DNA of 63,672 nucleotides, filler included, from Octopus bimaculoides (lineage: Eukaryota), in NCBI RefSeq assembly GCF_001194135.2. It is 4 parts of 4 records of this genome, joined end to end, with 100 filler letters (N's around TTAATTAATTAA, not from the genome) between each part and the next. Parts side by side here need not be neighbours in the genome. Positions count along the whole stretch, not along the records: positions 25,024 to 48,054 come from NC_068981.1; 3 more parts are not named here. One strand, 5' to 3'. The notes below the pieces were generated by a model, which saw nothing but the letters and a program-made list of their open reading frames with translations, was not told where the DNA came from and searched no databases. The position numbers were made by a program, and so were the translations under genes. Shown here in pieces: positions 26,607 to 37,696 of this stretch (the stretch's first letter is position 1; each line of letters starts with the position of its first letter).

Positions 26607-26882
26607 ACTTATTCTTTGTAAGCATAGTACTTATTTTATCGGTCCTTTTTGACGAACCACTATATTACGGAGATGTAAACACACCAACATCAGCTGTCAA
26701 GCGAAAGGAGAGGGACAGACACAGACATAAAGATACACTCATAAATATATACATATATATACACTGGGTTTCTTTTCACTTTCCCTCTACCAAATCCACT
26801 CAAAAGGCTTTGGTCGGCCCGAGGCTATAGCAGAAGACGCTTGCCCAAGATGGCACATAGTGGAACTGAACCCGGTACCATG
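26607..26882 (-). mobile_element. OK-like SINE lacking head and extreme 3' tail
   Basis: Matches the body of 33084-33480 (ggacttattctttgtaagc, gaggctatagcagaagac). Confidence 0.8.
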
Positions 26883-27005
26883 TATACATATAGGTATGTA
26901 TATATACATATACATGTAGGTATGTACATGTATGTATATATGCATATATTTATATATTATTTATATTACATGATATTATATTATATATTACATTATATAT
27001 ATATA

Positions 27006-31494: not shown

Positions 31495-31680
31495 ACAAAA
31501 TGCTTAGCGGTATTTCGTCCGGCTTTACGTTTTGTGTTGAAGTGATGCCGGGGGTAACTTTGCCCTTCGTTCTTTGGGTTCGATGAAATAAATACCCGTT
31601 GAGCATTGGGGTCGATGTAATTGACAATCCCTCTCTCTCCCAAAATTCCAGGCCTTGTGCCTAGAGTAGAAAAGATTATT
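31495..31680 (+). mobile_element. OR-like SINE (OR2-type tail)
   Basis: gcttagcggtatttcgtcc...ggggtcgatgtaattgac...ggccttgtgcctagagtagaaaagattat. Confidence 0.75.
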
Positions 31681-31824
31681 TTCACATTTATTTTTAATAA
31701 ACGAAGTAAATAATTATAGTAACACGTCGATAACGTATTAACGCAATTATTTTTTTATTTCAGAAATCCTATGATATTGTAAATAGTATGTGAAGAAAAA
31801 AAATGACCGCCTTCTTCGTTTCCT

Positions 31825-31953
31825 TTAGTATAGATAACTGGGTTCTTCCTGCGGAGATTCTGTAGTAGAATCACTCTCAGAAATACTCTTAGAATTACTC
31901 GCAGAACCACGACTATTGACTGGCGGGCAATTTTCTTTGTTGAGCATGGCTTC
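31825..31953 (-). CDS. Candidate terminal coding exon of the secreted Cys-rich peptide gene (EAMLNKENCPP...ESPQEEPSYLY*)
   Basis: Acceptor tttatttctactttcag|G, phase 0, matches the phase-0 donor at 33893. 42 codons plus TAA; AATAAA lies ~65 nt downstream. The pairing with the upstream exon is inferred. Confidence 0.5.
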   Translation of the reverse strand, partial: EAMLNKENCPPVNSRGSASNSKSISESDSTTESPQEEPSYLY

Positions 31954-32349
31954 CTGAAAGTAGAAATAAATTGCGTAGTACTGATTATATTTTAAACTAG
32001 GTATTAATATAATATATTTTATTATTCAGAAAGAGAGCACTTTTTAAACAAGATATCTAAAGATCTTTGCAAATCAAAAATGAGAGTTTTTAATTTCATT
32101 TGTTACCTTATTTAATTTTTCTTAGGACAATTATGTTGTAGCCAAAGTTTGAATTCTATAATTTCATAAATTAATGTTTTACCGTAACGAAACACAGTGG
32201 GTGACAAAGTTATGCAATTAATAACTAACTCCTTCGTGTAAGTATTTTCATGGTATAAGCATTCTGACATTATTTCTCTTTACTATAGATAGAATTCTTT
32301 TAACTAGTTTGTCCGGAATCATTTTAGATATCACATATTATACACAGGA

Positions 32350-32570
32350 TTCGAGAACTCCCTAGTGTTTTCAGTCATAAGAAAGCGTCGTCTAGCTCTT
32401 GCTGGACGTTTAATGAGACACAGTGAAACTGATGTGAGAGTCCTGTTCTGCCCCTACTCATAGGCATGGTCACCCAAATCTGATCCTCTTGAAAATCATT
32501 GAGGAAAATGTTGGACTACATGGCAGTGTCTTGATGAACGCGATACATGGAGGAACTTCATAGTATCAAC
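32350..32570 (+). mobile_element. RTE-clade LINE 3' fragment
   Basis: LPSVFSVIRKRRLALAGRLMRH...ERDTWRN resembles the RTE ORF2 C-terminus (RRLxxAGHxxR...DRxxWR). Confidence 0.65.
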
Positions 32571-33083
32571 AATTAGATTTAGATTGATTTTAAAATAAAA
32601 AAGCAAGATTTCTTTTAAATGTACAATACTGCAATATATATGAATATTTCGTCACGTTGTTTGTCTCTTATACTTCATGAAATACATCTACATTTCAGTC
32701 TTCATTAAGAGACTGTCGTGTAACGATAAACATGTATATCATGTCATCTTATCACAGACGGAAAAAGCGACGAGCGTTATATATTCTTGTTCTTCATGTT
32801 CTATTTTCAAATCCCACTAGAATCAACGTTACCTTTAAACCCTTCGGGGTCGATGAAACAAACAGCTAGTCAAGAGCTGTCGGTACTTTTTGTTTATCTC
32901 ACCTCCATTAAAAAATTGCCATTAAAAAAAATTGGGTTATCTCCCCACTAAAAAATCGACTTAATGTGGCTATAAGAGTTTGGATTAAAAGAGTCAGATG
33001 CTTTTGATTCAATACTTCAACTCATTGTTTGACGTTTGGCCTCCTCAATAGGCATGCTATGATTTGTTATAAAAATATTATCA

Positions 33084-33480
33084 GGCGTAGGAGTGGCTGT
33101 GTGGTAAGTAGCTTGCTTACCAACCACATGGTCCCGGGTTCAGTCCCACTGCGTGGCATCTTGGGCAAGTGTCTTCTACTATAGCCTCGGGCCGACCAAT
33201 GCCTTGTGAGTGGATTTGGTAGACGGAAACTGAAAGAAGCCTGTCGTATATATGTATATATATATGTATGTGTGTATGTGTTTGTATGTCTGTGTTTGTC
33301 CCCCCAACATCGCTTGACAACCGATGCTGGTGTGTTTATGTCCCCGTAACTTAGCGGTTCGGCAAAAGAGACCGAAAGAATAAGTACTAGGCTTCCAAAG
33401 AATAAGTCCTGGGGTCGATTTGCTCGACTAAAGGCGGTGCTCCAGCATGGCCACAGTCAAAAGACTGAAACAAGTAAAAG
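33084..33480 (+). mobile_element. Full-length OK-like tRNA-derived SINE
   Basis: A-box-like tggctgtgtgg, B-box-like gggttcagtccc, CORE-like ttgggcaagtgtctt, internal (TA/TG)n, and tail ggcggtgctccagcatggccacagtc...ctgaaacaagtaaaag. Confidence 0.9.
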
Positions 33481-33892
33481 NNNNNNNNNNNNNNNNNNNN
33501 NNNNNNNNNNNNNNNNNNNNNNNNNNNNNNNNNNNNNNNNNNNNNNNNNNNNNNNNAAGTAAAAGAAAAGTAAAAGAAAAAGATTCATTGAGATGTTTAA
33601 TTTTTTTCAGTTTTCATGTTTATTAATTTTTCAGTTTCCATGGTTATTAATTTTTCTGTTTTCTTTTGTTTCATTGAGGGTTAAACAATTTTTTTTAGTT
33701 GAGGGAGATGACCCAAAATACCGATATTCCTCGTAAAACGGGAGAGATAACCCAATTTTTTTAATGGGGGTGCGATAACCAAAAAGTATCGCTAACTATT
33801 ACTGTTATAGTACTTTTTTTTATTTTCTTCGAGAAAAAGGTAAATTTGAGTGAAAATATTTTAAAGTTACGAAACTAAGCGGCATGACTTAC

Positions 33893-34063
33893 CGCCCTAG
33901 TTCTACAATAGCAAGCGCATTTCTTGCTACAAGCGACACTCGTAGAAAGTTTACAAAGTGCTACCATGCATCTAGTGGAGCATCCACCAGAAAAGAATAC
34001 TGCTTCTACTCCAACACACAGCGCCAATGATATCAACATCAATTTTAAAGTTAAAGAAACCAT
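33893..34063 (-). CDS. First coding exon of a small secreted cysteine-rich peptide (MVSLTLKLMLISLALCVGVEA-VFFSGGCSTRCMVALCKLSTSVACSKKCACYCRTRA)
   Basis: Strong acceptor (T)n-gcag|AAAATG and perfect donor GCG|GTAAGT. Open 171-nt frame with a hydrophobic signal peptide ending V-E-A and 7 Cys in the mature part. Confidence 0.8.
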
Positions 34064-34508
34064 TTTCTGCAAAAAAAAAAAGAAAAACAGAACACACTAC
34101 AATTAATACAACTATACGATAATATTCCTGCATATTCAAATATAAGTTTAAACTTTCTGCTACCTCATATATTAATTTTAAAAAAAACAAGGTAGGATGT
34201 TTTCCACAGTTTACTGTAGCTAGTTTAATGTTTTGACATGCAGGTGAGCCCTTCCCACTCCCACCTACTTTCTCGCTTCTGTAACAGATGATGGAAGCGG
34301 CAGCGAAAGTGCTGTTTTCTGATTGGCTGAAAATTCTGAAAATTATCAAACTTTGAACATCTGTAACATTTTCATAAAGTTTTTCTAGAATAAATGAATA
34401 ACAAATTCGGATTCAGCGTCAAAAATTACAGCTATATGATACATTAAAAATGTTTTTTAAAGAGTTAGACATGCACTGACGATAACCACAAAGATCCCAC
34501 GCATATAC

Positions 34509-34542
34509 ATACATGCATACATACATACATACATACATACAT

Positions 34543-34577
<35 letters not shown>

Positions 34578-34601
34578 GGCATACGCACACACACACACAC
34601 A

Positions 34602-34697
<96 letters not shown>
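34509..34697. repeat. (CATA)n-(CAGA)n-(CA)n compound microsatellite
   Basis: Direct reading. Confidence 0.95.
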
Positions 34698-34699
<2 letters not shown>

Positions 34700-35479
34700 A
34701 AACACTATGTTTTGTTAGTAAATGCTTAAAAGAGAATCTGGATAAACTGGGATTTTCAGAAAGAGAAATTGTCCGGTTAATTCGTACATTACGAGTGCAA
34801 TCTGTGAGTAGAACAGTAAAAATATACAACACTTTTCTCAAGTTCCAAATGTGAATTTGTCTGTATTATCTATATCCCAAAGATGGAGCTTTGTATCTTT
34901 GTTGGAAACCGGCTCCCTCCTCAGTGGAAGATTTATAATAATTAAGAAATAGAAGAAGCACATAATGCATAGTACTATGACCACTTCCTAAACTCGATAA
35001 GTCCTTAAAAACTTTCCAAGAGGTTCCTGTGCACGAATTTGTTTTGAGCGAGTAAAGTGCCGCACAACACTGAACCCACTTTCAGTACAATGAGCTATAA
35101 AACTAGTGGCACAACAGGGGTTGAGACGCCCGGAAACCATCTGCACTTCAGACTTTGTTCTTTTCTTGATACAAGTTTCCCTTCTACTAGAAGGAAATTC
35201 TTTCGACACTAGAGGCCCTATATTCCCGATGGTTGACGTGGCATTTAACTCATAGCTGGGACCCGATTAGATGCTACCCCTCCGGGTCAGAATACACGTG
35301 GGAACAATAATTTTTTAGCAAACAAACCCTCAGCTTTCACGACATAGTTTGATGCATTCAGTAGTAACATATCATGTAGGCCGAAATGTTCTTCCTATTC
35401 CTAACTATATAAATATGAAAATGCAAATGTTTAAAATTAAATCCGCCTATGCAATAGATCCTAGAACTTTTTCTTTGTA

Positions 35480-35772
35480 AGCCGAGTACTTATTCAATCG
35501 GTATCTTTTGCCGAACCCCGCTATATTTACAAGGGCGTCAACACATCAACATCGGTTGTCAAGCGATGGTGGGGGGAAAACACAGACACAAAGGTACACA
35601 TACATGAATATATATAGATATTGGTATGTATATATATATGTGTGTTAGAAGGTTTGGAGGTGATGTACAGATATTATATGTTAGAAAAAATAATGTATTC
35701 AGAGATCTGGATGGTTGTACATATACAAATATCTGTTTATATACAACCATCCAGACCTCTGAATACCTTATT

Positions 35773-35804
<32 letters not shown>

Positions 35805-36320
35805 GTGAGAATTTATAAGCAAACAAAAGACGAAGACGGGTGTGTAAACAATAAACAGATGTATTAGTTTAACGCTCGGGAAGTTAGAAAGTCTTTTACG
35901 TTTCAAGCCTACGCTCTTCGACAGAAAGGAACACACAAATAAACAGGGAGAGAAAATAAAATATATATAAAATAAAATATAGAATAATATATATGTATAT
36001 CTGTAATATAATATGCGACAATTATTCGGTTGCTATAATAATTGTCACATATTATATTACAGATAAATTCCTCTATTTGCATAATATCGAGGTCTCTTTC
36101 ATTCTTTTGTTGTCTTACCATTACTATTAATATATATATACATACATATATATATATGACGGGCTTCTTTTAGTTTCCGTCTACCAAATCCACTTACAAG
36201 GCCTTGTTCGGTCCGAGGCTATAGTAGAAGACACTTGCCCGGCGTGCTACGGATTGGGACTGAACCCAGTGCCATGTGGTTGGGAAGCAAGCTGCATACC
36301 ACACAGCCACGCCTGCGCCT
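35480..36320 (-). mobile_element. OK-like SINE split in two (35480-35600 and 36157-36320) by Penelope-type terminal fragments
   Basis: The 3' and 5' halves of the SINE flank an inserted ~500-bp block that contains a hairpin and a hammerhead-like motif. Confidence 0.65.
35893..35928 (-). ncRNA. Degenerate minimal hammerhead ribozyme motif
   Basis: CUUU-CUGUCGA-A-GAGC-GUAG-GCUU-GAAAC-GU-A-AAAG. Stems I, II and III form; the core deviates from CUGANGA. Confidence 0.45.
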
Positions 36321-36388
36321 ATATGTATATGATTGTATGTATGTATGTATGTATAAAACTAGCATTTGTTTTAACACCAAGTGGACAT

Positions 36389-37604: not shown

Positions 37605-37639
<35 letters not shown>

Positions 37640-37655
37640 CACACAAACACACACA

Positions 37656-37696
<41 letters not shown>

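Follow-up and report, generated by a model that had tools for sequence, protein, structure and literature searches.

A highly expressed Octopus bimaculoides gene for a predicted secreted cysteine-rich peptide, the probable third member of an NP1-type tandem cluster

We analysed a stretch of Octopus bimaculoides DNA of 63,672 nucleotides, filler included, made of four parts of assembly GCF_001194135.2 and referred to here as the window; all positions count along it. In the part that comes from NC_068981.1 (positions 25,024 to 48,054), the minus strand carries a gene with two coding exons, which encodes a cationic cysteine-rich peptide of the secreted type with an acidic, Ser-rich tail. On this strand the sequence reads ttttttttttgcag, then the exon AAAATGG...AGGGCG, then gtaagt, which sets the first coding exon at 34066-33893. 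A polypyrimidine tract and a gcag acceptor precede the exon, whose last codon is number 57 and whose gtaagt donor is in phase 0. The second exon follows the acceptor ...ctttcag at 31954 and adds 42 residues, giving a full-length translation of 99 amino acids. The parts of the gene are as follows; X1 is an RNA sequencing run considered below.

33893-34066, minus strand: coding exon 1, including 3 nucleotides of 5' untranslated region (UTR), with the ATG at 34063-34061; read and translated from the genome, 0 mismatches to the X1 complementary DNA (cDNA)
34001-34063, minus strand: signal peptide, codons 1-21, MVSLTLKLMLISLALCVGVEA; from family alignments
33893-34000, minus strand: cationic Cys-rich core, residues 22-57, VFFSGGCSTRCMVALCKLSTSVACSKKCACYCRTRA; from translation and alignments
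31954-33892, minus strand: intron, 1939 nucleotides as assembled, GT..AG; joined in X1 at a depth of 4904
31825-31953, minus strand: coding part of exon 2, residues 58-99, EAMLNKENCPPVNSRGSASNSKSISESDSTTESPQEEPSYLY, with the TAA at 31827-31825; from translation and the X1 cDNA
31807-31824, minus strand: the part of the 3' UTR covered by cDNA; the X1 contig meets Illumina adapter at 31807, with the loose end TTCCCTACACGACGCTCTTCCGATCT
31754-31759, minus strand: AATAAA, a candidate polyadenylation signal about 70 nucleotides past the stop; read from the sequence, with its role presumed

The signal peptide is predicted to be cleaved after VEA, as judged by the pattern of its n-, h- and c-regions. 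The core that follows holds seven cysteines spaced C-x3-C-x4-C-x7-C-x3-C-x-C-x-C, together with six Lys or Arg residues and no Asp or Glu. An eighth cysteine is placed 12 residues beyond the core, in the next exon, where it forms part of an LNKENCP motif. The remainder of exon 2 encodes an acidic tail rich in Ser and Thr, the 42 residues of the exon having 7 D/E versus 3 K/R, and stretches such as ENCPPVNSR, GSASNSK and SISESDSTTESPQEEPSYLY lie within the 99-residue protein.

Public sequencing runs were aligned over positions 31500-34400 of the window. Run X1, O. bimaculoides RNA from 2015, yielded a single 361-nucleotide cDNA contig with a word depth of 4904, which matches the genome over 34066-33893, followed by 31953-31807, with no mismatch. 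The junction in this contig (33893 to 31953) skips 1939 nucleotides, which begin and end as GT..AG when read on the minus strand, and both edges of coding exon 1 are exactly the points at which cDNA and genome part. At the 5' end of the contig, 14 nucleotides (CAACACTTCATTTA) are unplaced, and the match to the genome ends exactly at the acceptor at 34066; there is therefore an upstream 5' UTR exon, and the gene has at least three exons. These 14 nucleotides are absent from the window, even when only the last 9 are sought, and have no sensible placement at up to two mismatches in L001 (the locus of the neighbouring gene LOC106875686) or L002, so that the exon is probably hidden in one of the many assembly gaps. 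The original prediction, which had been made from the sequence alone, was thus accurate to the base for both coding exons and for the encoded peptide, and its junction recurs exactly in the cDNA; the 5' UTR exon that it called for does exist, although its position was not found in the window, L001 or L002.

Expression of the gene is very high and is restricted to one library: among the O. bimaculoides RNA runs listed, at least 17 in number, only X1 holds either exon, and two RNA runs from 2026 gave zero reads on either exon in the portion sampled (about 6%, or about 1.9 gigabases, of each). Within X1 the depth is low (3.95) over 31694-31790, around the candidate AATAAA. A 125-residue open reading frame (ORF) in another frame of the minus strand (33972-34349) overlaps the start of exon 1 and extends through the upstream intron. 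The acceptor at which the X1 contig breaks from the genome sits inside it, we found no support for it, and it looks like a chance ORF.

The 99-residue protein is identical to UniProt A0A0L8GPL3 of O. bimaculoides, where it is named "TIL domain-containing protein". With filters off, phmmer returned four credible matches from among 1.84 billion representative proteins, namely the protein itself (P0001), P0002 (the product of LOC106875686; 91 residues, E 8.6e-17), P0003 and P0005 (the product of LOC106875685); a fifth, the 608-residue repeat protein P0004, was discarded as a spurious low-complexity match. A profile search added P0006, which is NP1 of Hapalochlaena maculosa (B6Z1Y7_HAPMA, E 8e-26). 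The UniRef name "TIL domain-containing protein" is common to P0001, P0002 and P0005, all from O. bimaculoides. Of the 21 signal-peptide residues, 19 are identical to those of NP1, and M1, K7, L10, S12, L13, L15, E20 and A21 are invariant in all members of the family, in which this segment ends in x-E-A. The seven core cysteines are invariant in the paralogues, in NP1 and in two orthologues, and an eighth is found in every member for which exon 2 is known, usually within an N-K-x-N-C-P motif. P0003, with 76 residues and apparently seven cysteines, was called on the genomic contigs L003-L007 (Logan, SRR11869384-94; for example L003 438-668). The final 20 residues of P0003 come from reading through a GTAAAT splice donor, so that its missing eighth cysteine and short tail are artefacts of gene calling. 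We are confident both of the identity of the gene and of its membership of an octopod-restricted family of NP1-type peptides, of which NP1 was the first to be described.

The two paralogues lie close by. L001 (CM046601.1) is 100% identical over 17033-18859 to positions 48054-46228 of the window, and this overlap places LOC106875686 on the same strand: it lies about 5.7 kilobases (kb) past position 48054 of the window, which is about 20 kb upstream of our gene. LOC106875685 is found on the same chromosome and strand about 46 kb beyond LOC106875686, such that all three genes fall within about 70 kb. They are built alike: in each the acceptor precedes the ATG by 3 nucleotides, the first coding exon contains the signal peptide and seven cysteines and ends at a phase-0 GTAAGT donor, and the second contains the last cysteine and the tail; the flanks of their introns can still be aligned, at 73-76% identity. 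The three genes are a tandem-duplicated cluster on one strand. A tblastn search found no further paralogue inside this piece of the window.

Homologues with conserved cysteines, for which a search had been proposed, thus exist, and the earlier statement that the cysteine spacing matches no nameable family gives way to membership of a small octopod family that includes NP1 and two tandem paralogues. The concern that annotation could easily miss the gene found little support: the exact model is already present as A0A0L8GPL3, while among the records searched for the newer NCBI assembly (GCA_001194135.2) both paralogues are recorded but no gene has exactly this product. The gene is annotated in one public set and perhaps missing or differently modelled in another. 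Gene and protein are in any case already public rather than undiscovered, and the family is recorded but uncharacterised. What is new here is that the gene is recognised as the third in a tandem NP1-type cluster, with a divergent tail, that its expression is extreme and restricted, and that both the TIL label and an analogy with mussel myticins fail when put to test.

The intron contains two further features.

33481-33556, no strand: assembly gap of 76 N, within the intron and bridged by the X1 cDNA
33052-33480, no strand: high-copy interspersed repeat resembling a short interspersed element (SINE), outside the gene product; its depths in RNA and DNA runs sum to 1e4-1e6

The gap is entirely intronic and therefore cannot alter the reading frame, and the cDNA that spans it establishes the two flanks as parts of a single transcript, ordered and oriented as given. 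An O. bimaculoides DNA contig from run X5 (depth 6.3) links 33480 to 33563 with only five letters (AATAG) between them, and on this basis the true gap is probably shorter than written, although a low-complexity repeat tail makes for weak evidence. The A-rich, GTAAAAG-type end of the SINE-like repeat abuts the gap. The summed contig depth of the repeat reaches 1e5-1e6 in DNA runs, the repeat is abundant on both strands in RNA runs, and ARAGORN detected no transfer RNA (tRNA) or tRNA-like gene in it; further copies are present at 26614-26883, 35473-35621 and 36138-36329 of the window and at 12188-12501 of L001. On the exon-1 side of the gap the intron also holds 2.5 copies of a 24-nucleotide tandem repeat, TTTTTCAGTTTTCATGGTTATTAA, at 33603-33663. 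Just past the 3' end of the gene, and outside the X1 transcript, lies a second repeated element (31500-31693), whose depth in the RNA runs of two species ranges from hundreds to thousands and which forms joints with the intronic repeat. Long (AC)n microsatellites are found upstream of the gene at 34519-34697 and 37605-37733.

Coding exon 1 does not itself belong to a repeat. Its contig has an ordinary, single-copy depth in other species' genomic runs (32.7 and 8.3) and only one additional contig there shares the signal-peptide part, which disposes of the concern, raised with the original prediction, that the exon might map to a high-copy element. This second contig, seen in the genomic runs X7 and X8 (33995-34087) and X6 (34018-34110), matches over the acceptor and the signal part and then diverges; it is the signal-peptide exon of a paralogue.

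Both exons, together with the flanking DNA, align collinearly with genomic contigs of organisms B and C, which are two further octopod species. In each of these the ORF is intact, with the position of the stop and all eight cysteines retained. Organism B differs from O. bimaculoides by ten amino-acid changes and six silent ones, for which the Nei-Gojobori method gives a non-synonymous rate (dN) of 0.052, a synonymous rate (dS) of 0.104 and a ratio of 0.5. Differences are more frequent in the coding sequence (18 of 297 nucleotides) than in the flanking non-coding DNA (about 6 of about 237), which hints at accelerated coding change, the numbers being too small for proof. Between P0001 and P0002 the signal codons have a dS of 0.14 and a dN of 0.09, compared with 0.72 and 0.61 in the core, and the cysteine framework is invariant even though the paralogues are otherwise only 40-48% identical. 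The better conservation of the signal region at the DNA level could reflect gene conversion or selection on the signal sequence itself. A conserved signal, a hypervariable mature region and fixed cysteines are together typical of conotoxins and of many families of venom and defence peptides.

Taking these results together, the reading that we favour, with modest confidence, is that of an expressed gene of the NP1 family, the third of a tandem cluster, whose product is a secreted peptide of the salivary or venom gland. Octopus venom is known mainly for enzymes, tachykinins and, in the blue-ringed octopuses, tetrodotoxin. We take NP1 to be one of the "novel peptides" of a posterior venom-gland cDNA survey by Fry, Roelants and Norman (in J Mol Evol, 2009), which reportedly recovered several such peptides without assigned function; to our knowledge these small peptides have never been characterised. 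A secreted role in saliva or venom is rated likeliest because of this presumed origin of NP1 and because secreted products dominate expression in the gland: the posterior salivary gland of octopus expresses serine proteases and other secreted products above all else (PMC7656900). The specific function as a component of saliva or venom, which is argued from relatives and sequence, falls a little short of an even call, and a target in prey would be somewhat more likely than an antimicrobial or protease-inhibiting activity. The earlier suggestion of a defence or venom peptide therefore stays plausible, since the closest named relative is NP1 of a blue-ringed octopus.

Several observations weigh against this assignment. 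The sole contig from run X2, which is from another species and tentatively RNA, is unspliced. The placement in the salivary gland draws on the presumed origin of NP1 and on expression in a single library. The searchable literature yields no functional data for any member of the family, antimicrobial or toxic activity included, and contains nothing relevant under A0A0L8GPL3, B6Z1Y7, LOC10687568x or octopus "TIL domain-containing". AlphaFold2, supplied with the five-sequence family alignment, returned a model (predicted local distance difference test, pLDDT, 48.7; predicted template modelling score, pTM, 0.20) that is too poor for a fold search. Finally, the orthologue dN/dS of 0.5 indicates moderate constraint and is no proof of positive selection.

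Several other explanations have been weighed. The public name suggests a reduced TIL-type (Ascaris-family) serine-protease inhibitor, which might restrain the abundant serine proteases of the salivary gland, whose dominance in gland expression (PMC7656900) would give such an inhibitor a purpose. The UniRef name is attached to this protein and to both paralogues, and by eye the spacing of the eight cysteines (3,4,7,3,1,1,12) is near that of Cys2-Cys9 in the bee inhibitor AMCI, 1CCV (3,3,7,3,3,1,11). Moreover, four of the five family members have K or R in the C-x3-C loop, the putative counterpart of what we take to be the AMCI reactive site. The label nevertheless fails on direct comparison. 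Pfam PF01826 matches none of the five members at E<=10, with or without the signal peptide; hhalign gives the family a probability of 0.5% against three solved TIL inhibitors (AMCI, 1CCV; LL-TIL, 8HWU; NAPc2, 1COU); the TIL hidden Markov model (HMM) scores these proteins no better than shuffled sequences (p 0.09-0.66); and neither the family profile nor the mature peptide finds a match among PDB sequences. TIL domains have ten cysteines to the eight found here, and without Cys1 and Cys10 two of the canonical disulfides would be broken; the G-C-x-C-x-x-G-(F/Y) signature of the TIL alignment is missing too. The public label is not reproduced by Pfam, by profile-profile comparison or by shuffle tests in our hands, it looks like an over-prediction from cysteine spacing, and we judge a TIL-type inhibitor to be quite improbable. 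One other Pfam match, to FAM176 (E=0.09, 13 bits versus a cut-off of 31.5), was rejected as compositional.

Rather less improbable, though still unlikely in our estimate, is a host-defence antimicrobial peptide (AMP) built like the mussel myticin, mytilin and MGD precursors, in which an anionic extension would mask the cationic peptide until cleaved. Mussel AMP precursors consist of a signal, a mature peptide with eight cysteines and an extension at the C terminus, 96-100 residues in all (PMC3210125), and the layout of our protein agrees with theirs; the core has a charge of +6 and no acidic residues, against seven D/E and three K/R in the tail. Three family members match Pfam PF10690 (Myticin-prepro) below threshold (E 6e-4 to 0.01), and a published proposal places antimicrobial peptides in the salivary glands of octopus (PMC7693380). 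Those matches, however, score 16-20 bits against a cut-off of 28.5, do not extend to this protein or to P0002, and on removal of the signal peptide are either lost or fall to 11 bits (E=0.52). Against nine genuine myticins hhalign reports a probability of 1.2%, and most scores with the myticin HMM fall in the range that shuffled sequences also reach (nominal p 0.04-0.26 if the signal is kept, 0.08-0.46 if it is not). The cysteine spacing of myticins is unlike that of this family, and in myticin C a separate exon encodes the mature peptide (PMC3210125), whereas here signal and core are encoded together in a single exon. A simple, cleaved-off anionic propiece appears doubtful on sequence grounds because the eighth cysteine lies in the tail exon, inside the supposed extension, and because no conserved dibasic site separates core from tail; the contrast in charge is also weak in the paralogue P0005. 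The likeness to myticins and to CS-alpha-beta peptides that had been drawn at the outset therefore holds for layout, and Pfam, hhalign and shuffled sequences offer no demonstration of homology, for which the layout is not evidence.

The reading of the locus as non-functional, that is, as an ORF arisen by chance, an exon derived from a repeat or a duplicate in decay whose transcription is incidental, could appeal to the orthologue dN/dS of about 0.5, which is not strong constraint, to the greater divergence of coding sequence than of flanks in organism B, and to the lack of a gene with this product among the records searched in the newer NCBI annotation. It is effectively refuted, and we assign it almost no weight: expression is very high and splicing precise, the ORF, eight cysteines and stop position are intact in two other species, the cysteine framework is unchanged across paralogues that are 40-48% identical, and depth in genomic runs is that of a single copy. 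A broader proposal holds that NP1-type peptides form an octopod-specific, four-disulfide class with a fold and target of their own, unrelated to TIL, myticin or CS-alpha-beta peptides, diversified by tandem duplication with an accelerated mature region, and making up a major active component of saliva or venom. In this full form it would be a possible but rather unlikely outcome.

If the gene does encode such a gland peptide, the pre-peptide would enter the secretory pathway and lose its signal peptide after VEA. The product of about 78 residues would then fold with four disulfides, one of which would link the core to the beginning of the part encoded by exon 2; as one disulfide must use the exon-2 cysteine, the first part of the "tail" would belong to the folded unit. 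A single secretory tissue, most probably the posterior salivary (venom) gland, would release it in very large amounts. Its active surface would be the basic core, acting on an extracellular target in prey (which we rank likeliest) or on microbes, while the remaining tail, probably disordered, would offset the charge of the core and keep it soluble, and may carry modifications or be trimmed. Tissue, disulfide pairing, processing and target are what we infer in this scheme.

These results overturn nothing, both sequence and family having been public beforehand. They do show that the genes of one "novel peptide" family are clustered in tandem in the octopus reference genome, and make it reasonable to synthesise the peptide and assay it for toxicity, antimicrobial action and protease inhibition.

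How the peptide compares with known systems can be set out on this footing. The TIL domain (PF01826) is likewise small, secreted and disulfide-rich, with a Cys2-Cys9 spacing near that of the eight cysteines here, but it is held by five disulfides among ten cysteines and bears the GC-x-C-x-x-G motif that our peptide lacks. Mussel myticins (PF10690) are also molluscan secreted precursors of about 100 residues, with a signal of about 20 residues, a cationic core of 36-40 residues that contains 7-8 cysteines including a C-x-C, and an acidic C-terminal extension. Their spacing, however, is C-x4-C-x3-C-x4-C-x4-C-x8-C-x-C-x2-C with all eight cysteines inside the 40-residue mature peptide, and they are peptides of Mytilus haemocytes whose exon layout is unlike that of this gene. 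Conotoxin superfamilies provide a parallel in evolutionary mode only, in that the signal is conserved even at silent sites, the cysteines are fixed and the mature region evolves fast; there is no sequence relationship, signal and core are here encoded in one exon with no pro-region exon, and the octopus peptide, which bears a C-terminal tail, is much the longer of the two. The closest counterparts are NP1 and the products of LOC106875686 and LOC106875685, which have the identical seven-cysteine framework, the extra exon-2 cysteine and lengths of 77-99 residues, despite an overall identity to this protein of just 40-48%. Within this group NP1 resembles an orthologue of P0002 rather than of our gene (the two share CRTPWEVR...EHGGFE...PTF), and the long acidic Ser/Thr-rich tail SASNSKSISESDSTTESPQEEPSYLY is unique to our gene and its orthologues, the other members having tails that are rich in His, Gly and Phe or else short and neutral.

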